Translations under genes and position numbers: made by a program | In this document: positions 128-40,900 of the stretch, piece by piece | How positions within the stretch are numbered: the stretch's first letter is position 1 | Layout: the number at the start of each line of letters is the position of its first letter | NCBI RefSeq assembly: GCF_052425735.1 | Contig: NC_135767.1 | Span: forward strand, 7,998,001 to 8,062,000 | DNA: 64,000 bases | Direction: 5' to 3' | From: Oculina patagonica | Taxonomy: Eukaryota | The notes under the pieces: generated by a model | Database searches by the model: none | What the model was told of the DNA's origin: nothing | What the model saw: only the letters and a program-made list of their open reading frames with translations

Positions 128-215
128 CACAATTCTGGGAAAAGTCACAATTCCAGGAAAATCACAATTCTAGGAAAAGTCACATTTCTAGGAAAATCAC
201 AATTCTAGGAAATGT
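128..215. repeat. Minisatellite: five 17-18 bp units CACAATTCTAGGAAAA(G)T, each containing TTCN3GAA
   Basis: Units at 128-145, 146-162, 163-180, 181-197 and 198-215, read directly from the sequence. Confidence 0.9.
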
Positions 216-291: not shown

Positions 292-1095
292 CTAATAACA
301 CAGAATTGGACATTGCCAGTTTGCCTCATCCCACAGATAGCGAATCTCCAACGTGGAGAGAATTATTGCAATGCCATTCTTGGCGATGAAGATAGACTCA
401 TCTTTGCCATATTTAAAGTAAACAAACACACGAACGATCAGGAATACCAAGTTGACGCAAACCATCTCCACTGCACTGCGTATTAATGATGTTTTCTTGC
501 GAACCGTCGGTTTTCCGCCGTTAAATTTGTTCTCTGCCATTTGCCAAATCGACAACAACAGACTGAAACATGCCACTACCACCATAGCTATTCCGACGCT
601 TTTCGATATTCCTACGGCATGTTCCTTTTCCTCCAATATAATGTCTAACATTTCCACAACATCTAGGAGATCAATGGCCATCTGGACTGATGATTTGGAC
701 ACTAGCTCTCTGTGTTTGTCAGATTCTTGCGAATCGTCTGCAGTGTTCAGCAACAGTATCAGAAGAACTGGCGTAATGCAAAGAACCATCTTCAAAGTAT
801 TTGGACCAAGGAAATTTTCTTTGTCGATGCCGTCTACGACGAATCCAAATATCAGGATAATGTTAGCTAATAAACCAATGATATACAAGCCCCAGACATA
901 AACCCATCGCCGAAGATCCGCTTCACGTAGAACCATCAAACAGATCCAGATAATTACTACTGGGACATACCAAGCAAACATAAAGAACCAGATGGTGTCT
1001 TTGTACTTGGCTGGGTAAGATGCTAGGAAACCGCACTGAGTTGCTAACAGAGCAAAAAATAGTAGACGTCCTCCCCATTTAACAAACGAAGCCAT
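292..1095 (-). CDS. TMEM121: CECR6/TMEM121-family multi-pass membrane protein, copy 1 (267 aa, intronless)
   Basis: Likely start MASFVKWGGRLL at 1095, by alignment to the paralogs. About six hydrophobic segments. Motifs FLGPNTLK, AIDLLDVVEML and SIFIAKN resemble the TMEM121/CECR6 family. The symbol is family-level only. Confidence 0.85.
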   Translation of the reverse strand: MASFVKWGGRLLFFALLATQCGFLASYPAKYKDTIWFFMFAWYVPVVIIWICLMVLREADLRRWVYVWGLYIIGLLANIILIFGFVVDGIDKENFLGPNTLKMVLCITPVLLILLLNTADDSQESDKHRELVSKSSVQMAIDLLDVVEMLDIILEEKEHAVGISKSVGIAMVVVACFSLLLSIWQMAENKFNGGKPTVRKKTSLIRSAVEMVCVNLVFLIVRVFVYFKYGKDESIFIAKNGIAIILSTLEIRYLWDEANWQCPILCY

Positions 1096-1184
1096 GAGTG
1101 GAGACTTAAGATTTTCTGCCGAGAACTTTACACCGAAGAAAGTGACTGTCTGAGAATGAAAACATAAAAAGCTGAGCAAGGCGC

Positions 1185-1800
1185 CTTTATAAACGAAGCT
1201 ATAACCAATCAGAGGCTGCCATTTGTGAAAACGAGGCATTGTCTAAGAGGGACATTCCCGAATATATTTCGCAATGTAATCTTAAATATCAAGGTTAAAT
1301 AAGTGAGATGGGAAGAACCCCCGTTTTATTTGTTCCCCTTCTTGAATATATACGTCAATCATTCCATTTAATAAAGGGGGAATTACCTAAAATACCTAAA
1401 ATGTGGCATATGCAAATCTCTTCTCGGAAACGGACGCCACATGCCGTTTTCATAGATTTCTCGGAAAGATTAAAGTATTTTCCGAAGCCCTCTGCAAGAT
1501 TTTTTTCCAATATTTTTAAGTACGTTACCTAAAACTGCAGAAATAGTTTATTTTGAATCTTATCGTGGCCTTAGATACAAGGAACTGTTGAACTGCGATT
1601 TGCTGCAGAATCGATTTCTTTTAATATTTTTTATGTGCTAACAAAACCAGCTGCCTTTTTGTAAACTGTTTGTATATGTTGCCTTCTCAAATTTAAGGGT
1701 AAGACCCTTTTGAAATATTTTCATTTTCACCACCTAAAAGTGATGTGTCGCTACCTCATTGGCTATCTGTGTTTACGTATCGTGGCATATATATAAAAAG
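1185..1800. promoter_or_regulatory. Divergent promoter region with TATA, CCAAT, kB-like, octamer and GAS motifs
   Basis: Minus-strand TATAAAG at about 1185-1191 and CCAAT at 1205-1209. GGGACATTCC 1249-1258, GGGAATTACC 1378-1387, ATGCAAAT 1410-1417, TTCTCGGAA 1421-1429 and 1458-1466, ISRE-like TTTCATTTTC 1719-1728. Plus-strand ATTGG about 1758 and TATAAAA about 1792-1799. Confidence 0.55.
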
Positions 1801-1864
1801 TATCATCAAGCTTTTTTCCCATTAGTAAGCACATTTTGCTTGCGACGTTTCTCAATCCAAAGAC

Positions 1865-2653
1865 ATGGTTTCGTTTGCTAAGTGCTGTAAGTGGGTAGCG
1901 CGTGCAGCTTTTTTCGCCCTGATAATAATTCAGTGCTTCTTTCTTGCTGCATATCCGGCCGAATACAAAGATAATTCCAACTGGTATGTTTTGGCTACTT
2001 CGTTTGGCCCAGCAGTTATCGTATGGCTCTGCCTCATTACCAACCAAGCAAAACTTCGCCGGTTGTTCTATGTTTGGGATTTGTACATTATCTGTGCTTT
2101 GATACCCAACATTGCCATCATATTTATCGGTGTCGGAGACAGCATCGACAAGAACAGGTTTCTTGGCCCGAATACTCTGAAGGCGGTTCTGTGCATCACA
2201 CCACTTCTCCTTCTACTGTTGCTCCACACTGCAGACGATTCGGATCAAAATGACGAATACAGAGAAGTAGTGTCCAAGTTGTCCTATCAGATAGCTATTG
2301 ATCTCTTCGATGCTGTGGACATGATAGACATTGTCTTGGAAGAAATCGAACACGACTATGGAATTCCGAAGGGTTTCGGAGCATTGATGATCGTACTGGC
2401 ATGCGTCACATTTCTGTTTTCTGCATGGCAACTGGCGGAAAACAAACTGGCCGGAGGAGAAGCGAAGATTCGTTTTCGAACAGCAATTTGGCGCAACATT
2501 GTGGAGATTGTTCTCGTCAATTTACCTTTCTTGATTATTCGCGCAGTGGTTTTCTTCAAATATGGCAAAGATGAGTCCATCTTCATTGCGAAAAATGGCA
2601 TCGCGATAATACTGTCCTTGTTAGAGATTCGCCATATTTGTGCTTCACGTTAG
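1865..2653 (+). CDS. TMEM121: CECR6/TMEM121-family membrane protein, copy 2 (262 aa)
   Basis: Intact ORF with FLGPNTLK, AIDLFDAVDM and GKDESIFIAKN. TATA box upstream; AATAAA at 2960-2965. Confidence 0.88.
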   Translation: MVSFAKCCKWVARAAFFALIIIQCFFLAAYPAEYKDNSNWYVLATSFGPAVIVWLCLITNQAKLRRLFYVWDLYIICALIPNIAIIFIGVGDSIDKNRFLGPNTLKAVLCITPLLLLLLLHTADDSDQNDEYREVVSKLSYQIAIDLFDAVDMIDIVLEEIEHDYGIPKGFGALMIVLACVTFLFSAWQLAENKLAGGEAKIRFRTAIWRNIVEIVLVNLPFLIIRAVVFFKYGKDESIFIAKNGIAIILSLLEIRHICASR

Positions 2654-3728
2654 CAACCAGCTAAGATTTGTCTGATCAATGTATTACTGATAAAAGTGAA
2701 CATTGAACATTGAACTACCGAGGAACTCATGCCTGAGAAGTATACATGTGAACACGTAAACCTGCTTGGAAACAAATACTTTTAGAGCTAGGACGATAAT
2801 TTTGTCATCAGTCAGCTACTAAAGACAACTTAAATAGCTTGCGTTTCCCTTAATCTTTTGAGGCGATCCGGCCACATCTGTTACTGTTAAATTGATCTGA
2901 TAGTGCATAGCTTCACTGCTTAAATGTGGTCTCAACAAATTTTATTCAGTCGTTGAAGGAATAAACTTAATTTGCACCTTGTATTCATAAGTGTTGTTTT
3001 TGTGTCCTGCAAGAGCATCTTTAAAGTATTAAGTCCCTTAAAAAGCCCTTGCTCCAGGGCTTTGGGCAAAAATAGTGGGGCTTCAGACTGTGGCTTCGAC
3101 CCCAGTTAGCTACTAATTACTTAAGGATCCAAAATATCAATCTGTTGTAAGGAAATTCCCTCAGTGTCACCAGAAAGCCAAGACGTTTTGAGAATGGTGA
3201 ATTTAATTTATTGCTGTACATCTAAGTGTATTCATAACTAATTAGAATGAAGCAAATATACGAGTGCGATTATTTATGGTATCTGGGTATGAAACGATAT
3301 TTTTCACTCTAATACTGCATTAGGTAATACACATAAAGTACGTAACACTCATTTATGGAAGATAAATAGATTAGTTTTTTAACGGTCCCATGCTATAATA
3401 AGCATGATCTAAAAGTGGCCATGATTTAAAGTTTTCTTTCGTAAAGATTTCTCGAAAGGGAAATTTTAAGTTACAAGGAAATTATTATTAACATTAAATT
3501 ATCAACTCAATATACTGTTGTCTGTACCTAATGAAGTTAGGATGTGTTAATAATGTTATGGACACGCGTGACAACATAGGGCTGTATTCTGCGTGTAATA
3601 GTGGAAATAAAATGTGAAAAAAAGCTTCCTTTTGCCTAGTTCTGCTGGCGTTATTTTCACTGGGAAAAGCTATTTATTGTTGCAATTAAATAAAAATTCA
3701 AATTTGTGACAAAGCAAATCGTTTTAGT

Positions 3729-3879
3729 TATAAAGGTCACTGACACAAGACAAATTTCTCAGAAATATGAATGTTCCAGAAACAATGTATGACGTCATAC
3801 TTTAAGAGTAAAGTCTTTTGTTATTTTCAAATTAGCTTTTCTCGGAAGACAACATTGTTTATTATTCGTTTTCTTGGAA
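3729..3879 (+). promoter_or_regulatory. Motif cluster upstream of copy 3: TATA-like, three GAS motifs and a CRE
   Basis: TATAAAG about 3729, TTCTCAGAA 3756-3764, TGACGTCA 3790-3797, TTCTCGGAA 3839-3847, TTCTTGGAA 3871-3879. Further upstream, GGGAATTTCC on the minus strand at 3151-3160. Confidence 0.5.
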
Positions 3880-3985
3880 ACACCGTGCTTAGGCTTAGCA
3901 TACAGGAATGGTATTACTTTAATCAAGGTATTATTAAACCTTGTGTATTATATTGCAGAACACGCATTGTATAAGGGTTAGCATT

Positions 3986-4783
3986 ATGGCTTTATGGCTA
4001 GTTGGGATTGGACGACTCATTTTCTTCGGCTTGGTAATCATTCAAGCCGTTTCCCTGTCTTCATATCCTGCAGAGTATAAACACGATCGTGGCTTCTATG
4101 GACTACTTGTCCTTTATCTCCCTGCTCTCGCACTTTGGATTTATATCATTTGCAATGACAAACATTTGCAGTGGATATTTGCAGTTTGGACATGTTATAT
4201 CGCTGGATTGGTCATCTTCATCGCGATCATCTTTGGTGGAAATGAACCAATCGAGGACAAACTCGACAAAGAAAAGTTTTTCGGTCCAAACATTTTAAAG
4301 ATGACACTTTGTTTAGCCCCGCTAATTCTGTTGCTTCTGCTTAGCACGGGAACCGATTCGATGGTCTACAGGGAGTTGATCTGGAAGTTGTCTCTGCGAA
4401 TGGCACTAGATCTTTTTGATGGAGTGGAAATGTTGGAAGTTATCATCGAAGAAAATGAAGTTAGCCATGAAGTTCCAAGGAGCTTTGAAAAAGCCATACT
4501 TGCCTTTGTTTGTATCAGCTTCTTGCTGTCGCCATTGCAGCTGATAGAGATCAAGCTGAGACGTTTCAGCGGCGATTGGAAAACTCGCACATGCCCAGCC
4601 GCATTGCGAACAACCATCCAAGTCATCTGCGTCAACTGTGTGTTTCTGGGGCTTCGCCTGGATCTTTTTCTGAAGTATGGGAAAGATGCATCCATTTTTC
4701 TCGCTAAAAATGGCATTATAATTTTTCTTGGCCTTTTCGAGATATGTTCGGTCTGTGAATGTTGTGGCTGTGATGAATATTAA
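3986..4783 (+). CDS. TMEM121: CECR6/TMEM121-family membrane protein, copy 3 (265 aa, Cys-rich C-terminus)
   Basis: ATG at 3986 (MALWLVGIGRL) matches paralog starts. Motifs FFGPNILK, ALDLFDGVEML, GKDASIFLAKN; ends CSVCECCGCDEY. Confidence 0.88.
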   Translation: MALWLVGIGRLIFFGLVIIQAVSLSSYPAEYKHDRGFYGLLVLYLPALALWIYIICNDKHLQWIFAVWTCYIAGLVIFIAIIFGGNEPIEDKLDKEKFFGPNILKMTLCLAPLILLLLLSTGTDSMVYRELIWKLSLRMALDLFDGVEMLEVIIEENEVSHEVPRSFEKAILAFVCISFLLSPLQLIEIKLRRFSGDWKTRTCPAALRTTIQVICVNCVFLGLRLDLFLKYGKDASIFLAKNGIIIFLGLFEICSVCECCGCDEY

Positions 4784-6230
4784 TGTAATGACTTTGCAGC
4801 CATGAGATGATAATTTTGTTTCGAGATCTGTAGGGAGCGTTTGTGTGTCAGAAAACGTATGTATAACCATAGCCATCTTTATGTGTTACACGTTATGAAT
4901 TCTTTTAGGAGAAAAGTATTGAGCCGTCTATTGTAAAGACTAAATGTTCAGTCCACGGTTTCATGCAGTAGCCCTTTCTATGGCGAGGAAATGTTTTGAA
5001 TGTAGATTTGTGTAACTGAGTCCCCTTATATTTTGTAACAACCATGTCCACGAGTAGAGAACTGTGCCAGAATCCACAACCAGAAATGTATGGCAGTTAT
5101 GAAGGAAAGACTTGTGTCCAGAGGGACAAGAAATCAGAAGTACACAAATTAAGGCACCTGAACTGATTTCGTGCAAATGTTCTTCAGTGGTCTTGCCGGT
5201 TTGACCGGTTTATTTGTACTGTTAATTTTTGATAAAATAACCAAGTTCCCTGTTTCAGATTGTAGCCGTTCTTTCACTCTTTCAAAAACTTAATAAAAAA
5301 TAAATGCTGTAACTAAAAGGCAGGGAGTGGCCACAGACAAAATGCATCAGAAATCTGGCAGGCAGACTCAGTGCTATTTTGATAGTGCAATTGCAATTCC
5401 TTAAACTTAGTTAACTGGCCTTCCTCCGTGATCGTTACCCTTTGTTTCATGGGAGAATTTCTTTATCTTAACGACAAAGGAGTTAAATGCAAATCAACTC
5501 AGTGCGTCAGAGGTGAGAAGCCGGGCGCATTTAAGCCTTCAGTACCAGACGGGAAAAAAAAGTACTGTGCACAGTGGAGCTTTGCCCAGCTATCAGATTT
5601 ATTATTATGAAATAACCTTTTCATTTTGTTTTGATAAAGCTATAGCATGCACCATTCGTGGCGTAACTAATTTTAACCCCTTGCCTACCAGAGCCAAACA
5701 CACTAAGCAACCGGCGGCCATATTGGACTCATATTGAATTATTAATAAGATTCAAAATTTGCTAAGCAATGGCATCTTTTCAAGTAAAGTACACCTAGAT
5801 TAAGCATTTAAAATGTATTCCAATCTCTTTTCCGCATTCTCTTACTGTACAGTTGCCTCGTATAGCTCCCTAGCTAACACCTTGACCATGTGCATTTGGA
5901 GGTTTAATTTCTTCGATCGATCAAAACTTCTTCTTCATCGCCAGCTTCTTCTTCTTTTTGTTTAGACTATTGAGAATCTGAGTGACTTGGCACAAATTCG
6001 CTGTGACTTAAATCACTTACATCAAAGTCGCGTTCCCCCAATTTTTTATCTGTTTCCCTTCTGCCTTTACCCACACGAGCCGCCTAACTTGTCTGAACGA
6101 AAAGCAATTTTATTGGGTCAGCAGTCTTTTGAAAGTAGTGCCAGCCCTTTCTCAACAACCGGGGATGATTTATTCAAGGCAGGCTCTCAGTAATGCCGTT
6201 GCCGGTCGTTGCGTGATAACAGATTCAATC

Positions 6231-6582
6231 GGGGAATCCCCTAAATTACCTAAAATGTGGCATATGCAAATTTTTTTTCTCGGAAGCAGAGTCCACGTGC
6301 CGTTTTCACTAATTTCTCGGAAAGAAAAATTCAAAGCGCTTTACGTATTCAAATCGTATCGTGGTCTTTGATACAAAAACTGTTGAAATATGCCATCCGA
6401 TTTGCCGCATTGATCACGTTTATACACATGATGTCATTCGTAAACTCTTACTATGTTGCATTCTTAATTTAAGGGTAAGTCCCTTTTGAAATATATTCAT
6501 TTTCACTACCTAAAAGCGAGGTGTCGCTACCTCATTGGCTATCTGTTGGCTATCTGTGTTTACGTATCGTGGCATATAAAAA
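6231..6582 (+). promoter_or_regulatory. Promoter of copy 4 with kB, octamer, two GAS, CCAAT and TATA motifs
   Basis: GGGGAATCCCC 6231-6241, ATGCAAAT 6264-6271, TTCTCGGAA 6277-6285 and 6314-6322, GGGTAAGTCCC 6473-6483, ATTGG about 6534, TATAAAA about 6576. Confidence 0.55.
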
Positions 6583-6647
6583 GTAGCATCAAGCTTTTTC
6601 CCCATAAGTAAGCACATTTTGCTTGCGACGTTTATCAATCCAAAGAC

Positions 6648-7436
6648 ATGGTTTCGTTTACTAAGTGCTGTAAGTGGGTAGCGCGTGCAGTTTTTTTCGC
6701 CCTGATTATAATTCAGTGCTTCTTCCTTGCTGCATATCCAGCCGAATACGAAGATAATTCCAACTGGTATGTTTTGGCTACTTCATTTGGCCCAGCAGTT
6801 GTCGTGTGGCTCTGCCTCATTGCCAACAAAGCAAAACTTCGCCGGTTGTTTTATGTCTGGGATTTGTACATTATCTGTGCCTTGATACCCAACATTGCCA
6901 TCGTATTTATCGGTGTCGGAGACAGCATCGACAAGAACAAGTTCCTTGGCCCAAATACTCTGAAGGCAGTTCTGTGTATCACACCACTTCTCCTTCTACT
7001 GTTGCTGCACACTGCAGACGACTCGGATCAAAATGACGAATACAAAGAAGTAGTGTCCAAGTTGTCATATCAGATGGCTATTGATCTCTTCGATGCTGTG
7101 GACATGATAGACATTGTCTTGGAAGAAATCGAACACGACTATGGAATTCCGAAGGGATTCGGAGCATTGATGATCGTACTAGCATGCGTCACATTTCTGT
7201 TTTCTACATGGCAACTGGCAGAAAACAAACTGACCGGAGGAGAAGCGAAGATTCGTTTTCGAACAGCAATTTGGCGCAACATTTTGGAGATTGTTCTCGT
7301 CAATTTACCTTTCTTGATTATTCGCGCAGTAGTTTTGTTCAAATATGGCAAAGATGAGTCCATCTTCATTGCCAAGAATGGCATCGCGATAATACTCTCC
7401 ATGTTAGAGATTCGCCATATTTGTGCTTCACGTTAG
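6648..7436 (+). CDS. TMEM121: CECR6/TMEM121-family membrane protein, copy 4 (262 aa; recent duplicate of copy 2)
   Basis: Intact ORF with about 15 mostly conservative amino acid differences from 1865-2653. AATAAA about 7736. Confidence 0.88.
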   Translation: MVSFTKCCKWVARAVFFALIIIQCFFLAAYPAEYEDNSNWYVLATSFGPAVVVWLCLIANKAKLRRLFYVWDLYIICALIPNIAIVFIGVGDSIDKNKFLGPNTLKAVLCITPLLLLLLLHTADDSDQNDEYKEVVSKLSYQMAIDLFDAVDMIDIVLEEIEHDYGIPKGFGALMIVLACVTFLFSTWQLAENKLTGGEAKIRFRTAIWRNILEIVLVNLPFLIIRAVVLFKYGKDESIFIAKNGIAIILSMLEIRHICASR

Positions 7437-9039
7437 CAACCAGCTAAGATTAGTCTGATCGACGTACTACCGACAAAAATGAACATTGAACTACCGAGGA
7501 ACTCATGCCTGAGAAATATACATGTGAAAATGCGAACCTGCTTGGAAACAAATCCTTTTGGGGGACAATAATTTCGTCATCAGTCAGCTACTATAGACAC
7601 CATATAGCTTGCGTTTTCCTTAATCTTTTAAGGCGATCCGGCCACATTTATTACTGATGAAATGATCTGATAGTACATAGCTTCATATCTTGCATGTGGT
7701 CTGAATTGAAACAGAATTTCTTTAGTCGTTAAAGGAATAAACTTATTTGGTTTCAAAGTGCTGTTTGTGTGACCAGCAAGAACATCTTTGAATATAAAGT
7801 CTTAAAAGAAGCCCTTGCTCTAGGACTTTGAGCAAAAGAAGTGGGGCTTCAGACTCTACCATACTCAGCTACTATTAAAGGATCCAACATGTCAATCTGT
7901 TGTAACGAAATTGTCTCAGTGTCACTAAAAAGTAATAAGCATGATCTGATAGTGGTCATGATTTCAAGTTTTTTTCTCGTGAAGATTTCTCGAAAGGGAA
8001 ATTTTAGGTTACAAGGAAATTATTATTAACATTAAGTAATCAACTAAATATACTGTTGTCTGTACCTAATAAAGTAAGGATGTGATAATAATGTTATGGA
8101 CACGCGTGACAACACAGGGCTGTATTCTGTATGTAATAGTGGAAATAAAATGTGAAAGAAAGTTTCCTTCTGCCTAGTTCTGTTGGCGTTTATTTTACTG
8201 GGAAAAGCTATCTATTGTTGCAGTTAAATAAAAATTCAAATCTGTGACAAAGCAAATCGTTAATTAGTTATAAAGGTCACTGACAGTAGACAGATTTCTT
8301 AGAAAAATGAATGTTCAAACATCATTGTATGACGTCATACTTTAAGAGTAAAGTCTTTTGTTATATTCAAATCAGCTTTTCTCGGAAGACAACATTAATT
8401 ATTATTCGTTTTCTTAGAAAGACCGTGCTTCAGCTTAGCATACAGTATTACTTTAATCAAGGAATTATCAACCCTTGTGTCCGGCAGAACACGCACCCGC
8501 AGTTTTGGTTGGTTTACTCTTTTTCTTCGGCTTGGTAATCATTCAAGCCTTAATACTTTTCCCTGTCTTCATATCCTGTAGAGTACGTATTAAATAGATT
8601 TAGCCAAGCCTAAAAGTGGAGCTCTTAAGTTTTTATTATTTTATGCGAAGTTTTTTTTATGTTAATGATGCAGAAACAACAGCAAATAATCAGTCAGGTA
8701 ATCAATCAAAAAGAAAATAATTGGCTAACAGTACTATTAGTTAGCAATCTGTGCAAAAACATAAGCCATGTACAGTTGTGACTTTAAAAAGGGGGTAAAC
8801 AGTATTTTTAGATCCAATTTTGCGGCAAAAGGGGCTATTATATAACTAAGACAGGGAAAATGAGTTAAAATGTGGTATGGTTAGGGCTACATACCACAGC
8901 TGGGTGGTTTAGCTACTTTGTGGCAAATAATTAGATATTCATATATGTTGCTTATCAACGTTTTCCTTTTCTCAAATATTTTTTCATCTTAATTAATAAG
9001 TGTCATGATGGGCTAGCATCCCATCCTAGGTGTACTAAA

Positions 9040-9347
9040 AAAAAAGGAAGCCTCAAGCCAACTGGCCCATACTGCCTGAGCTTATCCCGGTTTGATAGCA
9101 TTAAGCGCCTAGGAATATTTCCCCCTGAATGGGATGCTAGCCCATCGCAGGGTACCCCCCCACACACACACACACACACACACAGCATTATGTCGCTGGT
9201 ACCCATTTATACACCTGGGTGGAGAGAGGCACTATGAGAGTAAAGTGTCTTGCCCAAGAACACAACACAATGACCCCGGCCAGGCCTCGAACCTGGACCG
9301 CTCGATCCAGAGTCCAGCGCACTAACTATTAGGCCACTGGGCCTCCC
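9040..9347 (-). mobile_element. tRNA-derived SINE with Deu/Nin-like core
   Basis: Minus-strand head with A box TGGCCTAATAGTTAG and B box GGTTCGAGGCC; core TTCTTGGGCAAGACACTT...CCACCCAGGTGTATAAATGGGTACC. 12-bp TSD AGGTGTACTAAA at 9028-9039 and 9349-9360. Confidence 0.85.
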
Positions 9348-9774
9348 AAGGTGTACTAAATGGCAGGGTAATTAGGCCTATTTTCACCTGCTTCATGTAT
9401 AATTCTTTTAAAGTGATAATCTTGTTTTAAAATCTCTAAATGCATTTATAAAGAGATCACATCCTAACGTTTTTCTCTAGGGTGTGATGCAGGCCAGGGT
9501 TGCCAAAATTTTAACAGCAACAGACAGACAAATATTTGTGTTATGAATATTCCTGACTGCAATTTCAGCATTTACAGTATTTCAACATCTCATGACCTAT
9601 TCCATAATCATGATAGACTGTTCTGTTTGAATAAATAGGTCCTTCCTTATTGACACAATTGCCATTTATTAGCATCACACCCCCTCCATTTGTTAACTTC
9701 TTTTGAAGTTTATTCATCAGCCCATATTTCTGGTCCAGATCTTTTCATATGAAGGTAAAAAAAAGGTTCAGTCT

Positions 9775-9940
9775 GTATTCGCGCCTAGTGGACCATCAGC
9801 CAAGAGCTCATCCCGGTTTCAGAAGATGAAGTGACTAGGAGTATTTTTACTATTCCTGGATGGAATGCTTATCTATTATGGGGTTACCCCCCCCCCCCCA
9901 CACACACACACACACACACAGCATTAAACCATTAGGCCAC
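9775..9940 (-). mobile_element. Truncated copy of the same SINE family (tail part)
   Basis: Similar to 9050-9190 (agagctcatcccggtttc...ctaggagtattt...gggttacccc followed by CA repeats and cagcatta). Confidence 0.55.
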
Positions 9941-10802
9941 AGTGACTGCACCTCTCATAGCAAGGCCTTTAGATAAACAACTGAAATACTGAGTGAAAGT
10001 GATACAATCAAAGTCAGTTATAATCTATCAGGGTCAATCAGTCCTTTTACTATAATTTTTTTATTTTCTTACCTTTCCTTTGTTTGATATAACAAAATAA
10101 AATGATATGTTTTAACATAACTACTTTCAAAACTTCCAATAAGAGGTGGACATGGACGAGTTCTTACAGGAACATGTACTTTCTGTAACATGCACTGAGC
10201 ATTAAAACCACAAATAGTACATTGTATGATACCAAATTATTTTTTTTTTCACTCCAAATTAAAACCAATAAGCAAATTCTGTTTAATAGGAGCATTTGCT
10301 AGATTGCATGAAAACAAAAAAACAGTGTAAGAAATAGTTGATACAAAAATTGCTATTAAGGCATTCAGACTTTTTTATAGATGGCTTACAGAAGTTCAAC
10401 TCCAAGGCCATAAATAAATATTGTGCATCATTTCATCAACGTCATCTACCGGTATGTCTGTAAATAGAACAAAAGCAAGCAAACAATGCCATGTTAATAG
10501 CTGCAGAGTAACAAACACTCACAAAACACATGAACACTGAGTGGATGTTGTGTACAGCTGTAGTATATTCAATAATTGACCATAATTAAACTTAGCAAAA
10601 TTTTCTATTGAATGCTATACCACAAGATCCAAAGCCAGTTTTGAATGTTTTGGATTAAATGTTTGGTTTGTTTATTTATTTTTTTGAAACCAGTTTGATT
10701 TTCATTTCCCTTTGAATCAGATAATTTATGATAATGAATGTGAGACAAAGAAAGATAAAAAATACAAATAACCCTGTTTGCTTTTGTTGTTGTGTCCCCA
10801 TG

Positions 10803-11502
10803 CAGGATTCATGCTCTTTTGGCATTCTGAAATTCCATGTCTCTCCATGACCTTTTCCATGACACTTCGATGGTTTCCATGACCTAAATTTGACCATTTT
10901 CATTGGACATTTTTGAAAAATTATCTTGATTCCAGGTTTGTTTTAACCTTTCATTCACAAAAATAGCTTGCCTAATTTATTTTGTACAATCACTTATCAG
11001 AACCAATTTCCATGAACTCATGACCCACACTAAAATTCCATGACTTTCCAGGCCTGTAAAATGAAATTCTAAAATTCTATAGCTTCTCCAGGCTTGGAAA
11101 ATGAAATTCTAAAATTCCATGACTTTCCGCCTCCCGTACCTTTTACTCCCGCTTCCCGTACCTTTTACTCCCGCCTCCCACCCCTTTCCGTAGCTGTTCT
11201 CTCCTGTTTGTTCCATGTCTATTGCGAAATATAATGAAATGTTACGAAATTTCACTCGTTTTCTCCCGGTTCCCACCACTTTAGGAATCCCGCTTCCCGC
11301 CCTCTCTCCTCCCGCTTCCCGCCCCTTTTCTCCCGTGCTCCCGCCCCCTTGTCCCCCTCCACTGGAAAATGAAATTCTAAAATTTCATGACTTTCCAGGC
11401 TTGGAAAGTGAAATTCTAAAATTCCATGACTTTCCAGGCTTGGAAAATGAAATTCTAAAATTCCATGACTTTACAGGTTTTCCATGGCCTGTACACACCC
11501 TG
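10803..11502. repeat. Probable non-autonomous DNA element containing 39-bp tandem repeats
   Basis: Unit TGACTTTCCAGGCTTGGAAAATGAAATTCTAAAATTCCA repeated at about 11030-11128 and 11363-11471. CAGG...CCTG ends; no clear TSD. Confidence 0.5.
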
Positions 11503-12276
11503 CTATGGGGGGCTGGGGTTTCATATGCGTACATACAAAGTGGGAGCCATATGCACTTCACCACAGCTGCCAATACAACAGCCAAAATTTCACATGTAAC
11601 CAGTCAGCATCAATTATACTAAGTCACTTTCCCCTTTAATTCTTACTCTTAATCATAACAACATTTGTTATCCATGTTTTACATGTATTCTGTGCACTTC
11701 TCAGTTGTGAAAGGCCTGAAGAGGTTTCATTTGCTCATTAATCAAAATCAAACGAAATGCCACAGTTTAAACTCAAAGTTTAGTAAGTGTAAAATCCTAC
11801 AGTAAGTGTCTATAAAACCTACAGAAAAATATAAACGACTAAACCGACAAAAATCAGATTTTGAATTAATTCAGACTTACCTCATTTTGGGAGAACGCTG
11901 ATCATTTAAGTAGCGCAAAGCTTTTAAATCAGCTTTATAAATATCAGAGACGAAGCAGCGGTTTTTTCCTATTATTACGCAACTCCGTATTAAAGTAGCT
12001 AGTTGAACAAACATGGTTCTCATCTTCCCGGCGATTTGACCGTTGATATTTGTTATTGTTTAAACGGCTTGCCAGAATCTCTCAACTGTTACAGAATCTG
12101 AAAGAGAAAGGTCATCCCGCGGTAGAACGAATGATAACCAGGGCGAGTTCAGTTGTTTAGCTCGACCAACTTCTGGAGTATGGCCGCCATCTTGGTTTTT
12201 GCGCGACACCGTACGGACGCGCCCGCGAGCCATGCCGCTAGCCATGTAAACAATGAAAACTCATTTCGATAGCTTA

Positions 12277-12445
12277 CAGCAAGGCGCCCAAAAGTGTGAC
12301 CACTTTTAATTTATTCACATTCTTCCGTGCAGATTTAATCCAATCAGAAGTCAACTGGAACCTGTCCTTGGCTTCTGATTGGATGGTGGTTGCACGAAAG
12401 AATGTGAATTAATTAAAGGTGGTCACACTTTTGGGCGCCTTGCTG
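12277..12445. mobile_element. Tc1/mariner-type MITE
   Basis: TIRs CAGCAAGGCGCCCAAAAGTGTGACCAC and its reverse complement, with TA on both sides. Confidence 0.8.
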
Positions 12446-12490
12446 TAAAATATAAAAATGTTTAAAACAGATCTAAAAATACAAAACGAT

Positions 12491-12533
12491 ACTCTAAATT
12501 TTCGATCGCCTTCTGCGGTCTTCTTCAGAGAAT
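12491..12533 (-). ncRNA. Minimal type I hammerhead ribozyme motif in the Penelope pseudo-LTR
   Basis: Reverse complement reads ATTCT-CTGAAGA-A-GACCGC-AGAAG-GCGATC-GAAA-AT-TT-AGAGT: stem I, CUGANGA core, stem II, GAAA, palindromic minimal stem III. Confidence 0.7.
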
Positions 12534-12580
12534 GATGGATTTTTGCAAGGTTCGCAGAATTCTAATAAGCTACATCGACG

Positions 12581-13036
12581 TTATTGTTCGTTGTCCCCCT
12601 GGGGAGCAACTAGCGATGCGTAAACCCTTGGGAAGGGCGCTCTTTCGTTAATAGTGTTTTTGCCGAGGAAGGAATGCAAGGATTCCAGAAACAGTCTTTT
12701 GCTCTTGCTGCTTACACCTGTTTCAAGAATTTCGGCGTAACTTGGATGTATGTCGTGGCCGATTTCTGCATGATGTTTAATCGCGGAGTTGATATTTCCG
12801 TTTGTTCCGGGCTTGTGTTCGGCTCCCCGCGATTTCCAGTTTCTTTTGCTTTCCCCAACGTATGCAAATGGACATGTCCTGCAAGTCACTTTGTACACGA
12901 TTCCTTTCAATTGATCTTTATTCGGTCGGTCCTTGGGCTTTTTGAAGATATTTCCTAACGTTCGTACTGGTTTAAACGCTGTCTTGATGTTTTCGCGGCT
13001 CAAAATCCGTCGAACGCGCTCCGACACTCCTTTCAC
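12581..13036 (-). CDS. Penelope-like element RT C-terminus and GIY-YIG endonuclease (fragment)
   Basis: GIY-YIG motif with the CxxC spacer and downstream H and E residues typical of Penelope endonucleases. No true start codon. Confidence 0.8.
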   Translation of the reverse strand: MKGVSERVRRILSRENIKTAFKPVRTLGNIFKKPKDRPNKDQLKGIVYKVTCRTCPFAYVGESKRNWKSRGAEHKPGTNGNINSAIKHHAEIGHDIHPSYAEILETGVSSKSKRLFLESLHSFLGKNTINERAPFPRVYASLVAPQGDNEQ

Positions 13037-13220
13037 ATATGGAATGGACGGGTATGCCTTCGGATTCTCCTGGGTTCTTGGTTGCGTGTTTGTTTTGTTT
13101 GATTCGCCAGCTGACTTGATAAAGCTCTCGGGATAACCGTTACACGCTTTTAAGTCATTAATAACGCGTTGTTTCTCGTTTTGTCTTTGCGCAGTTGTTG
13201 ATGGAATGCACTTAGCTCGG

Positions 13221-13509
13221 CACAGGGAGCAGAGGAACCAAATTCGACCTTTGTAAATATTAAAATGTTCGATCTATTTCGCAGCGCTTCTCCCGCCCTG
13301 GTTGCTGGTTATCTGATCATTTTGTTTACGCGACGGTTAAACCAGCGGGAATCCTGTTGCGCTTGGTGTAGCCGCAGGCTCAATAGACTATTGAACGAGC
13401 TTAACCGTCGCGTAAACAAAAAGATCGGATAACGTATGACAAGCGCTACGAAATAGATCGAACATTTTAATATTTACAATGGTCGAATTTGGCTCCTCTG
13501 CTCTCTGTG
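13221..13509. mobile_element. P-element-type MITE inserted in the Penelope ORF
   Basis: TIRs begin CACAGGGAGCAGAGG (CANRG motif). 7-bp TSD AGCTCGG at 13214-13220 and 13510-13516. Removing it restores the minus-strand frame LMDRAKCIP. Confidence 0.8.
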
Positions 13510-13660
13510 AGCTCGGTCCATTAAAGCAAAACAAAAACACTATAAACGAAAGAGCGCCCTTCCCAATGGTTTACGCATCGCTAGTTGCTCCCCAGGGGGA
13601 CAATGAACAATAACGTCGATGTAGCTTATTAGAATTCTGCGAACCTTGCAAAAATCCATC

Positions 13661-13703
13661 ATTCTCTGAAGAAGACCGCAGAAGGCGATCGAAAATTTAG
13701 AGT
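13661..13703 (+). ncRNA. Minimal type I hammerhead ribozyme motif in the inverted pseudo-LTR copy
   Basis: ATTCTCTGAAGAAGACCGCAGAAGGCGATCGAAAATTTAGAGT, identical to the reverse complement of 12491-12533. Confidence 0.7.
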
Positions 13704-14112
13704 ATCGTTTTATATTTTTAGATCTGTTTTAAACATTTTTTTAAGCTATGACTTCAGATCGCTCCAGCAGTTTCATTTCGATAGTGTTACTTCTTCTTTC
13801 TGCTTTCTTTCATGGTTATGGTGCTCTCCTCTGCGGCCCTTCGGGCCGCTGTAGAGCTCCGCTATTAAATAGATTTAGCCAAGCCTAAAAGCGGAGCTCC
13901 CGATTTACAGCTGACCAATAACAGAAAAAAATATAGCACTTGAGCCTGCGATCCAATGTTAACCATTATTTGGTCAGCGGAAAAACATTCGACCTCGATG
14001 AGTTCTATATGAGAGCCCGCGATATGGTCATGTGATACTGGTCAGCGGATACCTTGTTTTGACAGCTGTCAATTGATCATGACATGTAAGCTGGCGTTAA
14101 CCATAACCTTAA

Positions 14113-14418
14113 AGGCCCGGTAATACGGGCAACATTTTTGTTCAACTTGTCTCGCAACATTGTTGCATTGCAAGTTGACCGAGCGCTCAACTTGTCTCGC
14201 AACAAATTTCGGTGTTGCAAGTTGCAGCAACATGTTGCACAAAGTAGAACCGAGTTCTACTTTTTGCAACAACTTTTTCAACCTGCAACACCAAAATTTG
14301 TTGCGAGACAAGTTGAATTGAGCGCGCGGTAGTAATACGGGCAACAACTCGGTCAACTTGCGATGGAACAATGTTGCGAGACAAGTTGAACAAAAATGTT
14401 GCCCGTATTACCGGGCCT
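14113..14418. mobile_element. PIF/Harbinger-type MITE
   Basis: Long TIRs AGGCCCGGTAATACGGGCAACATTTTTGTTCAACTTGTCTCGCAACATTGTT. 3-bp TSD TAA at 14110-14112 and 14419-14421. Confidence 0.8.
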
Positions 14419-14421
14419 TAA

Positions 14422-15242
14422 GGTGGCTGAATACAGTTTTTACGTGGCTCAAAAGCGCGCGCTACGATTTTCTGCCGACGTCAATATTGCTCACGCGGGC
14501 TAAAATGGCGCTAGCAACTCTAAATAAAACGAAAAAGAGTTCCAGCTCTTTTACCGTGCTTGACCAAATTTGTATACAAGAGAAAACTTCAAAACACTTT
14601 CAGATAGGATTTTAAACCCGGGAGGGGAAATAATACGACAAAAAGATAGATAAATCACCGACAGAGAAGTTCTAATTCTGTCTTTCATAATCGCTCGCGA
14701 CGCATGGCGTCATATTAGCGCGCGCTCGCACGCGCAATTCGATTCTCTTCGGAGGTCGTAAAAGCCAAATTTTGATCCAGATTTTCTCGAAAATCTACCG
14801 TACAACCTATTATGAAACTTTCACAATTAATTTTAAGGGGTAATCACGTCTACAGCAAAATTTTTAAAAAATGTGTAAGACAGATTTTGAGCTATTTTTA
14901 AAATCGGCAAAATATCACATATTTCTTTTTTGCAAAAAAATCTGGCTATTATTTTGAATGAATGTTTAATCAGAGCCAATGTCTAATTTCTGAAATTTTG
15001 AGGTAGGGTCATACGGGTAGATTTTGAGAAAAACGCCGTTTTAACTACTAGTGCCAGTCCCCTCTTAAGAACTCGGCCGTTCATTTTAGCTGTTTATTAG
15101 AATTTTAATTTTCCAAATGTCGCATATGATGGTTTTAGGATGTAACAAACAGTAAAAAGAGAAAGATAAAACTTTTCTGGAGATTCTCAAAGAGGGATGA
15201 AAGTTGGACTGAATTTCCCTCTCAAAACTGTACTAGGCCACC
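14422..15242. mobile_element. TTAA-targeting non-autonomous DNA transposon (Kolobok-like)
   Basis: Imperfect TIRs GGTGGCTGAATACAGTTTT and AAAACTGTACTAGGCCACC, flanked by TTAA on both sides. Confidence 0.65.
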
Positions 15243-16579
15243 TTAAACCGATTTCTGGAGTATGGCCGCCATGAGGCAACTTCGTCGTCGTCGTCGTCGC
15301 ACGCGCCCGCGAGCCATGCCGCTAGCCATGATGACCATGGAAAACCAAAAGCATGGGTCTGTTAATTTTCTATGGGTATGGGGCTCTGCTCTGCGGCCCT
15401 TCGGGCCGCTGGGAGCTCCGCTATAAAAACAATCGTGGCTTCTATGTGCTACTAGTCCTTTGTCTCCCTGCTCTCGCACTCTGGCTTTATATCATTTGCA
15501 ATGACAAACATTTGCAGTGGATATTTGCAGTTTGGACATGTTTTGTCGCTGTCCAGATTCGTCATCTTCATCGCAATCATCTTTGGTGGAAATGAACCAA
15601 TCGAGGACAAACTCGACAAAGAAAAGTTCTTCGGCCCAAACATTTTAAAGATGACACTTTGCCTTGCTCCGCTTATTCTGTTGCTTCTGCTTAGCACAGG
15701 AACCGATTCAATGATCTACAAGGAACTGATCTGGAAGTTGTCTCTGCGAATGGCACTAGATCTTTTTGATGGAGTGGAAATGTTGGAAGTTATCATCGAA
15801 GAAAATGAAGTTAGCCATGAAGTTCCAAAGAGCTTTGAAAAAGCCATACTTGCCTTTGTTTGTATCAGCTTCTTGCTGTCGCCGTTGCAGCTGATAGAGA
15901 TCAAGCTGAGACGTTTCAGCGGCGATTGGAAAATTCGCACATGCCCAGCCGCATTGCGAGCAACCATCCAAGTCATCTGCGTCAACTGTGTGTTTCTGGG
16001 GCTTCACCTGGATCTGTTTCTGAAGTATGGGAAAGATGCATCCATTTTTATTGCTAAAAATGGCATTATAATTTTTCTTGGCCTTTTCGAGATATGTTCG
16101 ATCTGTGAATGTTGTGGCTGTGATGAATATTAATGTAATGACTTTGCAGCCATGAGATGATAATTTTGTTTCGAAATCTGTAGGGAGCGTTTGTGTGTCA
16201 GAAAACGTACGTATAACCATAGCCATCTTTATGTGTTACAAGTTATGAATTCTTGTAGGAAAAAAGTATTGAGCCGTCTTTTGTAAAGACTTAATGTTCA
16301 GTCCACGGTTTCAGTAGCCCTTTCTATGGCGAGGAAATGTTTTGAATGTAGATTTGTATAACTTAGTCGACGTCCCCAATTATTTTGTAACAACCATGCA
16401 TGTCCATGAATAGAGAACTGTGCCAGAATAAATCCACAACCAGAAATGTATGGCAATTATGAAGGAAAGACTTGTGTCCAAAGGGACAACAAATCAGAAG
16501 TACACAAATTAAGACACCTGGATTGATCCTGTGCAAATGTTCTTCAATAGTCTTGCCGGTTGGACCGGTTTATTTGTAA

Positions 16580-21429: not shown

Positions 21430-21680
21430 CTGTTAAAGACACAGAAAGAAAAAAATAATAAAAATTAATAGTTTAGCACAAAATATTGACATTGAGATCA
21501 AAGATTCAATCAGATTTTTAACTCGTGCATCACCACTGAACCGAAAGAGAGATGATATATGTTTTGTAAAAGACTTAGTTAAGACGATCTTATCTCTTGG
21601 AGCTTGTTTCTTTTTATAGTTTAAAAGGAATAGTTTGCAGAACAAATAGACAAAAATTTGCGCGGGTAAAGGCAAATACG

Positions 21681-21921
21681 NNNNNNNNNNNNNNNNNNNN
21701 NNNNNNNNNNNNNNNNNNNNNNNNNNNNNNNNNNNNNNNNNNNNNNNNNNNNNNNNNNNNNNNNNNNNNNNNNNNNNNNNNNNNNNNNNNNNNNNNNNNN
21801 NNNNNNNNNNNNNNNNNNNNNNNNNNNNNNNNNNNNNNNNNNNNNNNNNNNNNNNNNNNNNNNNNNNNNNNNNNNNNNNNNNNNNNNNNNNNNNNNNNNN
21901 NNNNNNNNNNNNNNNNNNNNN
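21681..21921. other. Assembly gap
   Basis: Run of N. Confidence 1.
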
Positions 21922-24810
21922 TTATCAGAGGTTATATTACAGCCGATCAAGAGCCAATCAGAGAGACCTGTGCGGAACTCTTTTCAGTTGTGTCAGTTGG
22001 GAAGGATCAAGCGTGCGAAGATAGCAGTCTATATTTTTTATACAAGAGTCTAGGAGTTGTGACTAACTACATGATTTTGTTTGAAGTGGGCACATCTAAG
22101 GAATCGTAATGCTGTGGTTATTCTAGTGTTTTTTTGTATTTACGTTATGTCTATTTTTCAGTCGAAATAGTTTTTACCTTGTCGAAATGAAGTGACATCG
22201 GAATATGTCATTAGCACAGTAATCTGTAGCCAGCCTTGCAATTCTCCTTTAAAGTCATCTTCCATTTGTTTGTTCCACTAATCAAGCACAAGTAAACAAA
22301 CGAACGAATGGTCGATTGTACTAAGAAATATTGCATTGGAGTAATATTTAAGTGGAAAGGTAGTGAATTTAGTTAATTATAGGTGATAAAAAAGAGTCTG
22401 AACAGTAAAGCAATAATGACAATAATAATAATTATAAAAACAATGTATAATTATAATAAAAACCTTCCCAAAATCCTTTGCAACTGAAAAATCGTCAATG
22501 CCAAATAACTTGGTCAGTTTGAAGTCAGCAGGAGTAGTACGTCGTATAGAAATAACTCTTACCATAAACTACTTCTTGTATAAGTCGTAGGTCGATGACG
22601 TCATTAGTCACCTGGCTTTGCTCGGAAGTTCGTTTTTGCTCACTGTGACGAAAATAGTTTGTTACTGAAAAAGCAGTCATTGCAGTTTGAAGCACATTGG
22701 TGTGAGGCATTTCGGACTGCTCAGGTACGGAACAAAATATAAATATTAATGAAAATGGAATCTGGGTACAAGTGCGTATCTGGCGTTGCATTAAATGTAA
22801 GGTAATCAATCCCATTGTTATGACGTCATCGGTCACGTGACCAGAACGGATCACATTTTAAATTCGCTTGAAAACTTTACTAGAACCTCTCTCTTAGGAT
22901 CTTTTTGAGCGAAGTTGTAGTTTTTTAAATAGTGTTTTTAAAAATGGCCATTATTACTTTTTCTTGAAAAAGTACGGCAATAAAAAATACAATTGAAAAG
23001 TTTGTTGGCTTCCTACTCAACGACCATTTGCATTTGAAATAAAAGAAAATTTTGCCAAAGGCTTGAGTGTATGCTCTATATGATAGCGTTGTCAGTTTCT
23101 GTTCATTTTAATTGCTTTTGGCGAGGATGGATTTTATTTCTTTCAGACGAAAGGAGAGGCGCCTGGGGAGAATTTAATCTGCGGCCCCCTTCCCCTCTCC
23201 CCTGCTTGCGGATTCCCCGTGGTCCGTATTGCGGGCTCATGACGAGCATTTTCAAAATGGCGTCGATGGCGATCTTATGAAGTGATTTTGAGTTATATAG
23301 GATAGTTTTGTCAATGTTCTTTCTTCTTGACGCGATCACGAGTCCCCAGACAAAGGGTATGCAATATCCTTTATTTGTATTCCCGATAAAGAAGAATATG
23401 GAATGAGGAGAAACGGTGGAAGCTTTTCGCAAACATTTCTAACAGAAACTTACAGTGACCTGAGGTAAGCATTTCTCATTTTACTATAATTTTATTTTGA
23501 AGACTGGCTTAAAATTATGTCTTCGGCGTTTATGTGAAGATTTATAAAAGTGCTAAAGATAAAATCGTGCCAAAACTTAGCTAACTGGAATTAAAGCCGA
23601 GATCGGCGATTAAAAAAAAATAGATATTGTAGATTTTGAGGCGATAGTATCATAGTAATGTCACTCAGTTCGTCGAGGCATGTAATTGTTATTTATATTT
23701 GTCATCTGAATGTTAAGCTACTTCAAATTAATAAGAATCGCATCCATTCATTATTTATACGTGAGGAAATGTTTGTCGAAATATTGACCAAGTGGTAACT
23801 TAAAATTTGTATCTTTCCATGATGTGTATTATATTGCCAGACATAGATTTACGTTTCTTTTGCATTTTGTGGTATACAGGTAATTTGTGGGATTAATAGA
23901 ATGCCTAATGTGTAAACAGGATTTACAGAATTCAGAACTGAGGAATTTCTGAATTACTGGTGAGTTAAACTATGGATTATAACAAGTTCAGGTAGTTATT
24001 GATCTATTCAGCCAATCTCAGCAATTCCCATCCTCCTCTCTACACACATTCATTACCTGAGACATTTAAGATCTACTTCCTGACCAGACATTTGCCTACT
24101 TTATAAAAAAGCTGTTGACATTTTTTAAGGCATGTATTTTCAGTTGTTGTATGGCCTTCAGTAGTATTTTAAACTACAGCTAGCAATGTAAAAAAATCAA
24201 ATGAAGCCTGACATTTTTTCTGCAAAATTATGATTAATGAAAGGAAGGGTGCAAAGAAAATTAATTTCTTTCTGGCCTGACCCAGGTAGACTGGGCAATG
24301 TCATTTGGCTATCTAGCAAGTGGAAAAAATTATTGAATCCACTAGCCCAACATGAAAGCAGTCAGTTATTTTTTCACACACTGAAAAAGGCCATTTAATA
24401 TACAGTCTGCATGCTGGAAAAATAGCAATTTCTTTAAAATAAATAGTTTTTGTTTGTTTTGTTTCTATTTACAGGTGACTTGAAGAGTGCAATGACATTC
24501 CTCTTAGTCAAAATGAAATCAAAAATACACATTGTGTTAATGCAATAAAATTGTCACATGATTGATTCCCACATGTTGCCAGTTTAAGCCTGAAATATAT
24601 ACTTTAGTGACATTTATAGCTATTTATGTAATATGAACATCCCAGAACCCAATAAGGCTACATGTGAATCTTGACACTCTGTTACATGTAAGATTTGAAA
24701 CCACTCTGGGGTTCATGACAAAAATATTTTGTTTCAATAAAAATAATGAAATTACAGAGAACTTACGAAATTATTATCGCAGACCATATATAATGGCAGT
24801 TTAATTATAA

Positions 24811-40222: not shown

Positions 40223-40900
40223 CTAGCGAGCCTTCGATGTCATTCTCCGCGTCCAAAGCTTTCGAAGAAGGGCATCGCATTTTCCCTGCAATCGACGCTT
40301 GAGCTGCTTTAACCTTAACTCGGCGACCGCTTTCTCGGCTTTAGCTTCTTTAATTTTTACACTTATGCGGGAACTTGTTCTTGAGCCAGAACGACGACTG
40401 CTTTTCGAAGAAGAAGAGGAGCCCTGCTGACTAACGGAATCGTTTGGATGGACATCGTAAGCCACAACTTGTGCATTGAGCTGATCGCCTTCCATCCACG
40501 CTTTAACTCGCCGCTGGAATTCGAACTTCTCACGAAATCGATTTTCGTATTCCAAAGTCGCTTTCTCAATCTCTCGACGATCTTCGAGGACTTGCATATA
40601 CGCGATATGCGCGCGTTCGTAATTAGCAAATGCTGCATGAACAACCTTGAGCTTATTGTTAACAAGTTCCATGTTCGCCTTGTCCGACATCAAAACTTCT
40701 GTTTCATCGTAAAGTTTAGTTAGATATCCCTGATATCCAGCACGAGATCGTTTTAAACCTTTCTTGGTTTTCGCGGGAAGGACATTAACGCTGCCACCAC
40801 GAGCGCCATAGTCGGAACCATCGATAGGCATTGCCGCATCAATGCTATCAACCTCTACACCATCGTCGATATCGGGAAAGAAATCACCAGATTCCGCCAT
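40223..40900 (-). pseudogene. BEL/Pao Gag N-terminal fragment
   Basis: MAESGDFF...LKRSRAGYQGYLTK..., HPNDSVSQ followed by a Ser-rich run and coiled coil; truncated by frameshift. Confidence 0.7.

Follow-up and report, generated by a model that had tools for sequence, protein, structure and literature searches.

Conserved GAS-like and kB-like promoter words across a stony-coral cluster of intronless TMEM121/CECR6-like genes

The TMEM121-like gene cluster

The stretch of DNA analysed here, referred to as the window, comprises 64,000 nucleotides of Oculina patagonica contig NC_135767.1, and its first 35 kb contain clustered intronless genes that belong to the CECR6/TMEM121 family (PF14997). A sequence-only reading of the window had proposed that these genes could be immune-inducible, on account of motifs for STAT and NF-kB, two signal-activated regulators, in their promoters: the interferon-gamma-activated sequence (GAS) TTCN3GAA and NF-kB binding (kB) sites. 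Comparison with orthologous loci shows that the GAS-like and kB-like words are non-chance, conserved cis-elements of the TMEM121-like family across stony corals and almost certainly act as regulatory switches; conservation supports functional promoter modules of STAT-like and NF-kB-like kind well. Which factors bind them, and whether immune or stress signals induce the genes, we infer from the words and their arrangement.

Matches to PF14997 had E-values of 1e-24 to 1e-31, and six intact genes scored 87-110 bits against a Pfam gathering cut-off of 25. The top protein matches came from stony corals (Orbicella 81%, Desmophyllum 77%), and the family consists of orphan membrane-protein genes that are expanded in this group. 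Full-text searches on TMEM121/CECR6 in corals or other cnidarians returned nothing relevant from the library of papers searched. The members in the window are as follows, where dS denotes synonymous divergence.

292..1239, minus strand: c1, TMEM121/CECR6-like, intronless, 315 amino acids, divergent from c2 (PF14997 E-value 1e-30)
1865..2653, plus strand: c2, TMEM121-like, intronless, 262 amino acids
3986..4783, plus strand: c3, TMEM121-like, intronless, 265 amino acids counted from the ATG at 3986
6648..7436, plus strand: c2dup, young copy of c2, dS 0.13
8490..16130, plus strand: c3dup, broken, with an N-terminal remnant lacking an ATG at about 8490-8580 and the C-terminal 194 codons at 15549-16130
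32222-33034: c5, coding sequence, PF14997 family
34310-35104: c6, PF14997 family

The copies c2dup and c3dup belong to a segmental duplication of 4.8 kb, in which positions 1690-3905 are repeated at 6466-8445 with 83-94% identity. Because of this match, the GAS-like sites at 6277, 6314, 8296, 8379 and 8411 were treated as copies.

Motif census of the window

TTCN3GAA was found 41 times in the window against 28.6 expected, a count reached by 3 of 100 shuffles. The stricter pattern TTCYNRGAA, which is the STAT5-type GAS rule of invariant TTC/GAA arms with a Y-N-R centre, occurred 20 times against 6.96 expected and was matched by none of 100 shuffles; 15 of these 20 sites fall in the first 8.4 kb. 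The kB consensus GGGRNWYYCC gave eight matches at five places, compared with 2.67 expected (1 of 100 shuffles).

All of the TTCN3GAA sites listed in the sequence-only reading were present (1421, 1458, 3756, 3839, 3871, 6277, 6314, 8296, 8379, 8411 and 32073), as were the spacer-only changes it described between duplicates (TCA to TTA at 3756/8296 and TTG to TTA at 3871/8411), and five sites beyond that list were located in a tandem array at 128-212. Its guess of one chance occurrence per 3 kb lies close to the shuffle expectation of about one per 2.2 kb. Its caution that duplicated promoters are not independent was well placed, half of the counted sites stemming from the 4.8-kb segmental duplication.

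The census has to be read against the possibility that chance words were merely multiplied by the 4.8-kb duplication and by tandem repeat, without any function. Ten of the 20 TTCYNRGAA sites are indeed duplicates or tandem copies, and neither the kB word at 3151 nor the site before c5 looks different from a chance match. Against this explanation, collapsing the copies leaves about six sites per 4.8-kb unit where the window TTCYNRGAA rate predicts about 0.5, and the words recur at matching relative places in at least eight other coral lineages at dS 0.4-1.3, between spacers that have diverged. We consider chance hardly credible.

The kB-type sites previously proposed at 1249, 1378, 3151, 6231 and 6473 proved to be of unequal value. 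Those at 1249, 3151 and 6231 fit the consensus, while 1378 (GGGGAATTACC) and 6473 (GGGTAAGTCCC) miss it by one base; the latter two, though off consensus, are orthologous to conserved kB-like blocks. The word at 3151 is not conserved, being absent from the window's own duplicate and from both corresponding spacers of locus L002, and it was rejected as a functional site; it is probably a chance match.

1249..1258, plus strand: kB consensus 10-mer GGGACATTCC, 10-19 bp upstream of the c1 ATG
3151..3160, minus strand: kB consensus GGGAATTTCC, not conserved

Comparison with orthologous loci

Orthologous loci were chosen by protein identity alone, and no motif was used in their selection. They included Orbicella (L001), Desmophyllum (L003), further coral assemblies (L002 and L004-L008), Stylophora (L030) and Acropora digitifera (L031); Orbicella LOC110059046 and Stylophora LOC111324213 are examples of the orthologous genes. 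A column-identity test on pattern-selected sequences was discarded as circular, and gene-anchored alignments were used instead. The dS of c2 orthologues from the window ranged overall from 0.41 to 1.28 (0.41 for L002, 0.65-0.84 for L003-L006 and 1.1-1.3 for L007 and L008), values that exclude recent horizontal copying of the locus, and their dN/dS was about 0.15-0.28.

TTCN3GAA reached a density of 2.6 per kb in the 800-bp regions preceding 29 family genes, compared with 0.55 per kb over the remaining 200 kb. The stricter TTCYNRGAA rule was followed by 51 of 59 upstream sites and by 36 of 109 background sites (Fisher 1e-11, a descriptive figure since homologous sites are not independent). Differences between orthologous sites fell almost entirely in the central three bases, where the Y-N-R form was kept, and an arm was changed at a single site, in L005. 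A hypothesis-free count of 8-mer presence recovered TTTCTCGGAA in 18 of 29 gene-anchored promoters (p about 2e-10), ranking it beside the start-site block, the proximal kB-like word, the 24-bp box described below and GGGAATCC. Conservation in orthologous promoters had been set beforehand as a test of the immune proposal, and the GAS-like words are kept across stony corals. Of the kB-like words, the distal palindrome, lost in an Orbicella-like lineage, and the proximal GGGWAAGTCCC are conserved, and the one at 3151 is not. The GAS-like words are family-wide; the kB palindrome is limited to c2-type genes.

Promoter architecture of c2-type genes

The distal part of c2-type promoters carries a module of constant order: GGGGAATCCCC(TAAA), TATGCAAAT, TTTCTCGGAAA, CCACG(T/C)G and (GAT)TTCTCGGAAA. 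These correspond to a kB palindrome, an octamer, a first GAS-like word, an E-box-like box and a second GAS-like word, the consensus form of which is again TTTCTCGGAAA. The module is kept in 13-14 of 16 c2-type promoters of the gene-anchored set, which represent Orbicella, Desmophyllum and at least five further coral lineages, and lies 330-800 bp upstream of the ATG; altogether it precedes c2-type genes of at least eight coral lineages spanning dS 0.4-1.3. In most copies the two GAS-like words are 36-38 bp apart from start to start. The window holds two versions.

1377..1387: decayed kB palindrome GGGGAATTACC of the distal c2 module
1410..1417, plus strand: octamer ATGCAAAT of the distal c2 module
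1421..1466: GAS-like pair TTCTCGGAA, starting at 1421 and 1458, 37 bp apart and flanking CACATG at 1438-1443
6231..6322: intact c2dup distal module, with GGGGAATCCCC at 6231-6241, ATGCAAAT at 6264-6271, TTCTCGGAA at 6277, CACGTG at 6294-6299 and TTCTCGGAA at 6314

The spacers between kB word, octamer and first GAS-like word range from about 9 to 45 bases, are not alignable and differ by indels that are not multiples of three. Constant words between spacers of changing length and sequence are what a phylogenetic footprint looks like.

Such blocks might also be kept for a reason other than promoter function, as an unannotated exon, an upstream open reading frame (ORF), a small RNA or the product of gene conversion among paralogues. 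Paralogues within one genome do carry very similar modules (L003, L004/L006 and L007), but gene conversion cannot act between species, and spacer indels of the kind just described also speak against this explanation. Transcript coverage was drawn from Logan contigs of four runs typed 'RNA?', with conditions not coded; these contigs are 95-99% identical to the window and probably represent other alleles or species. They cover the coding regions of c1 (over 316-1281), c2 and c3, and one of them, X4 (1628-2013), begins upstream of the c2 TATA box, a point in favour of this explanation. No contig from the four runs covers 1401-1600, the region of the distal module, and no Rfam family matches the module. 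On balance a non-promoter origin of the blocks appears highly unlikely.

A scan of metagenome contigs for the arrangement GAS-CACG-GAS returned 21 matches, ten of them in coral DNA. All ten coral matches included the octamer and most the kB palindrome; nine stood in the expected orientation, approximately 400-450 bp 5' of a c2-type gene, and the contig of the tenth ends just short of where the gene is expected. The other 11 matches had neither kB nor octamer word, were mostly of different base composition and look like chance. Because the module pattern was found in these contigs only ahead of c2-type genes, we take its exact grammar to be private to this lineage, a result that speaks neither for nor against a wider regulon using another grammar.

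Two further observations concern the surroundings of the module. In one group of c2 paralogues (L004, L005, L006, L010, L015 and L024) an extra homeodomain/POU-like word, AAATAATTAAAT(T), stands just 5' of the octamer. In L008, a distant coral lineage, positions 6000-6450 contain two or three tandem units of about 170-190 bp, each with TTCTAGGAA, CACGCGACTCT and TTCCTAGAA; these units, 3.6 kb ahead of a c2-type gene in which the kB palindrome alone is kept, look like a diverged and multiplied form of the GAS-box-GAS module.

The proximal c2 promoter is likewise conserved between corals, and comprises a kB-like word, an octamer, a 24-bp box, a TATA box and a start-site block.

1697..1707: proximal kB-like block GGGTAAGACCC, read as GGGTAAGTCCC or GGGAAAGTCCC in orthologues
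1719..1728: 'ISRE-like' 10-mer, aligned with octamer TATTTGCATTTT in most species
1742..1765, plus strand: conserved 24-bp box GATGTGTCGCTACCTCATTGGCTA, with an inverted CCAAT in some species only
1788..1842, plus strand: TATA box (1788-1799) and conserved block TTAGTAAGCACATTTTGCTTG (1822-1842) of the c2 promoter
6473..6483: proximal kB-like block GGGTAAGTCCC of c2dup, placed by orthologue alignment

Across species the proximal kB-like word has the consensus GGG(T/A)AAGTCCC, or GGGWAAGTCCC. The 10-mer at 1719, which had been put forward as resembling an interferon-stimulated response element (ISRE), is present, but orthologue alignment identified it as a decayed form of the second octamer (TATTTGCATTTT, ATTTGCAT); the ISRE core GAAANNGAAA is not conserved at the orthologous place and is already broken in the window's duplicate, and the ISRE assignment was dropped. 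The 24-bp box has the cross-species form GATGTGTCGCTACCTNATTSGCTA, and its counterpart in the duplicate lies in the region 6519-6542. The TTAGTAAGCACATTTTGCTTG block sits 25-45 bp before the c2-type ATG and probably lies at the transcription start; with the TATA box it forms the likely start-site region of c2. AGTAAGCA is present in 14 of the 29 family promoters. Both the 24-bp box and the start-site block are deeply conserved and have no obvious binding factor.

Promoters of c3-, c1- and c5-type genes

Outside the c2 type, the GAS-like words occur in other settings.

3756..3879: c3 promoter, GAS-like words at 3756, 3839 and 3871, cAMP response element (CRE) TGACGTCA at 3790-3797
8296..8419: duplicate c3 promoter, GAS-like words at 8296, 8379 and 8411, CRE at 8320-8327, preceding the broken c3dup
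128..212: tandem array of five TTCYNRGAA words with a period of 17/18 bp, about 80-160 bp 3' of the c1 stop codon
32073..32081: single TTCTGGGAA, 149 bp upstream of the c5 coding sequence (32222-33034), inconsistently conserved

The layout of the c3 promoter is matched twice in L002. The Stylophora c3-type promoter has a TTCTCGGAA/TTCTCAGAA pair 33 bp apart and half a CRE, and both c3-type copies of Acropora digitifera have a GAS-like pair 43 bp apart. The presence of the pair in robust corals as well as in Acropora places its origin before the split of robust and complex corals. The best-kept element of the c3 promoter is CGTTTTCTYGGAAA, found in seven of seven copies compared, with Stylophora and two genes of Acropora digitifera among them. 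A pyrimidine-rich stretch precedes the c3 ATG by about 30 bp; it ends in AG and is followed by a conserved AACACGCA (window 3930-3985; L002 11560-11609); given this splice-acceptor-like stretch, c3-type genes may have a short intron in their 5' untranslated region.

The array at 128-212 represents the expansion of one conserved caaTTCTAGGAAaagt site; L002 has single-copy homologues of this site at 13643 and 19873, each about 130 bp 3' of a c1-type gene. The lone site before c5, which had been counted among the promoter motifs of the family, did not hold up as a conserved element: TTCN3GAA occurs in two of four c5-type promoters (once in the window, three times in L008, and not in L004 or Stylophora), and its presence, differing between species in this way, resembles that of a chance match.

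Other features of the window

The two halves of c3dup are set apart by approximately 7 kb of repeats. Among these are two tRNA-derived copies resembling short interspersed elements and ending in (CA)n, at about 9040-9345 and 9760-9940, with a tRNA-like match on the minus strand at 9271-9343, and minisatellites with 39/40-bp and 22-bp units at 11030-11477. The ORFs at 12581-13036 (minus strand, inside c3dup) and 40223-40975 had no Pfam match. A run of N at about 21650-21900, either an assembly gap or masked, falls within the ORF 21597-22109. Genes with VWA and tyrosinase domains adjoin the TMEM121-like cluster in L002, L003 and L005, from which the neighbourhood is syntenic in several corals.

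Candidate factors and the nature of the modules

The GAS-like words of the family share the 9-bp TTCN3GAA palindrome, follow the TTCYNRGAA half-site rule and occupy orthologous promoter positions. Several other readers of TTTCTCGGAAA were considered. The conserved variants (TCAGAA and TAAGAA; TTCTCAGAA and TTCTAAGAA) do not retain the GGAA core, a point against ETS or NFAT-type proteins, and HSF is excluded by the 3-base spacer. Readings as a Rel half-site, an IRF site or a ZNF143-SBS were set aside by consensus reasoning, on spacing or on loss of GGAA.

The kB palindrome allowed a closer comparison. The word at 6231 is identical to the 11-mer of the H2 site from the major histocompatibility complex (MHC), GGGGAATCCCC, which was co-crystallised with a p50 homodimer (PDB 1SVC) and gave the top p50 protein-binding-microarray z-score of eight test duplexes (PMC9262625). 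The cnidarian protein tested, from a sea anemone, has a DNA-binding profile like that of human p50, and no NF-kB type other than the p50-like homodimer has so far been reported from cnidarians (PMC5700166). In Nematostella, Nv-NF-kB activates the Nv-TRAF3 promoter through similar kB sites (PMC10329013). The same animal has one STAT (PMC8713801), and a 2024 review found no functional Jak-Stat studies in non-bilaterians (PMC11193209).

The main rival to an immune-inducible reading is that the modules, although conserved and functional, act as a cell-type-specific enhancer and direct constitutive expression in cells such as cnidocytes, neurons or gland cells, through POU, bHLH, Rel or other proteins. 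The reader of TTCYNRGAA would then be a protein other than STAT, such as a BCL6-type BTB-zinc-finger repressor, and that of the kB palindrome a zinc finger of the ZAS/Schnurri type; HIVEP/ZAS proteins do bind the MHC H2 palindrome. In Nematostella, cnidocyte development reportedly requires NF-kB itself. The octamer and the CACGTG/CACGCG box are kept just as strictly as the GAS and kB words, and an extra homeodomain-like word, AATAATTAAAT, accompanies the octamer in several lineages. What speaks against this alternative is that GGGGAATCCCC is the exact optimum of a p50-like homodimer, and that the Y-N-R constraint with invariant TTC/GAA arms is the STAT5-type rule. We grant constitutive cell-type expression somewhat less than an even chance.

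Several points weigh against signal induction by STAT and NF-kB. An octamer and an E-box as partner words suit a cell-type programme no less than an inducible one. The 37-bp (3.5-turn) spacing of the GAS-like words differs from the known spacing of STAT tetramers. In the window, the c2 module itself has decayed in its kB word (GGGGAATTACC) and in its E-box, where CACGTG has become CACATG (CpG to CpA), while the young duplicate c2dup retains both the palindrome and CACGTG; such decay in the module shared by c1 and c2 may represent relaxation or division of labour after duplication. An Orbicella-like lineage has no kB palindrome, and the start of contig X4 upstream of the TATA box counts on the same side. 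Finally, knock-down of nvSTAT left the cGAMP response of Nematostella unchanged (PMC8713801), a result that also favours cell-type expression and makes 'immune' only one of several possible inputs.

Proposed mechanism and significance

Based on these comparisons, we propose that selectively maintained cis-regulatory modules would co-regulate the stony-coral expansion of intronless TMEM121/CECR6-like genes. In c2-type genes, a putative distal enhancer, located some 300-400 bp ahead of the core promoter, contains the GGGGAATCCCC kB palindrome, the octamer TATGCAAAT and a GAS-like pair, in which two TTTCTCGGAAA words 37 bp apart flank a CACGTG/CACGCG box. A separate proximal block is made of GGGWAAGTCCC, a second octamer, the 24-bp box, the TATA box and the start-site block. 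The c3-type genes have two or three TTCYNRGAA words and a CRE within 220 bp of the ATG, and c1-type genes share the c2 distal module divergently and have one TTCYNRGAA word 3' of the gene. A coral STAT dimer is predicted to bind the TTCYNRGAA palindromes family-wide and a p50-like NF-kB homodimer the kB palindrome of c2-type genes, the two together rendering the cluster signal-inducible.

That maintained modules co-regulate the cluster, and that candidate STAT and p50-like NF-kB binding makes it signal-inducible, is in our judgement about an even prospect. The narrower claim that the TTCYNRGAA words are genuine coral STAT targets and the palindrome a genuine p50-like NF-kB target remains tentative, and we would lean towards doubting it. 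An immune-inducible arm of cnidarian immunity, as originally suggested for this family, is plausible.

If the words are genuine targets of both factors, the family would be the first conserved set of direct targets known for a STAT/NF-kB response outside the bilaterians, and that response would amount to an inducible arm of membrane proteins in coral immunity or stress signalling; the TRAF3 promoter of Nematostella is the only validated cnidarian NF-kB target promoter found in the literature searched. The 90-bp module of fixed grammar, kept at dS above 1, offers a ready substrate for reporter assays and electrophoretic mobility shift assays (EMSA) of joint cnidarian STAT and NF-kB action, and the expanded orphan family supplies concrete genes to follow in transcriptomes of coral disease, bleaching and symbiosis. 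Were the module a cell-type enhancer instead, it would be a compact and deeply conserved driver, possibly useful for coral or anemone transgenesis.

Comparison with known systems

Composite GAS/kB cytokine-response promoters are known from vertebrates, among them those of beta-casein, CIS, IRF1 and ICAM1. Like the coral promoters, vertebrate STAT5-type GAS promoters follow the 9-bp palindrome rule with T and A flanks and carry paired or multiple sites, and in both settings GAS words are combined with kB, octamer or C/EBP-like words. The coral system differs in its cnidarian host and in the start-to-start spacing of its GAS-like words, which is 32-43 bp as opposed to the roughly 20 bp of STAT tetramer sites.

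The kB site of the MHC class I H2 enhancer shares with the coral site the identical 11-bp palindrome GGGGAATCCCC and the T(A/G)A that follows it. In vertebrates the H2 site is part of an immune-gene enhancer to which p50 homodimers or p50/p65 bind, whereas the coral word is a putative binding site in front of an orphan membrane-protein gene.

The closest cnidarian parallel is the Nematostella TRAF3 promoter, in which, as in the coral module, kB sites lie less than 1 kb from the start, and where Nv-NF-kB binds similar G-rich/C-rich 10-11-mers (PMC10329013). TRAF3 has three dispersed kB sites with no described GAS partner, demonstrated by EMSA and reporter assay (PMC10329013), whereas the coral module sets one or two candidate kB words in a fixed grammar of octamer, GAS-like words and E-box.

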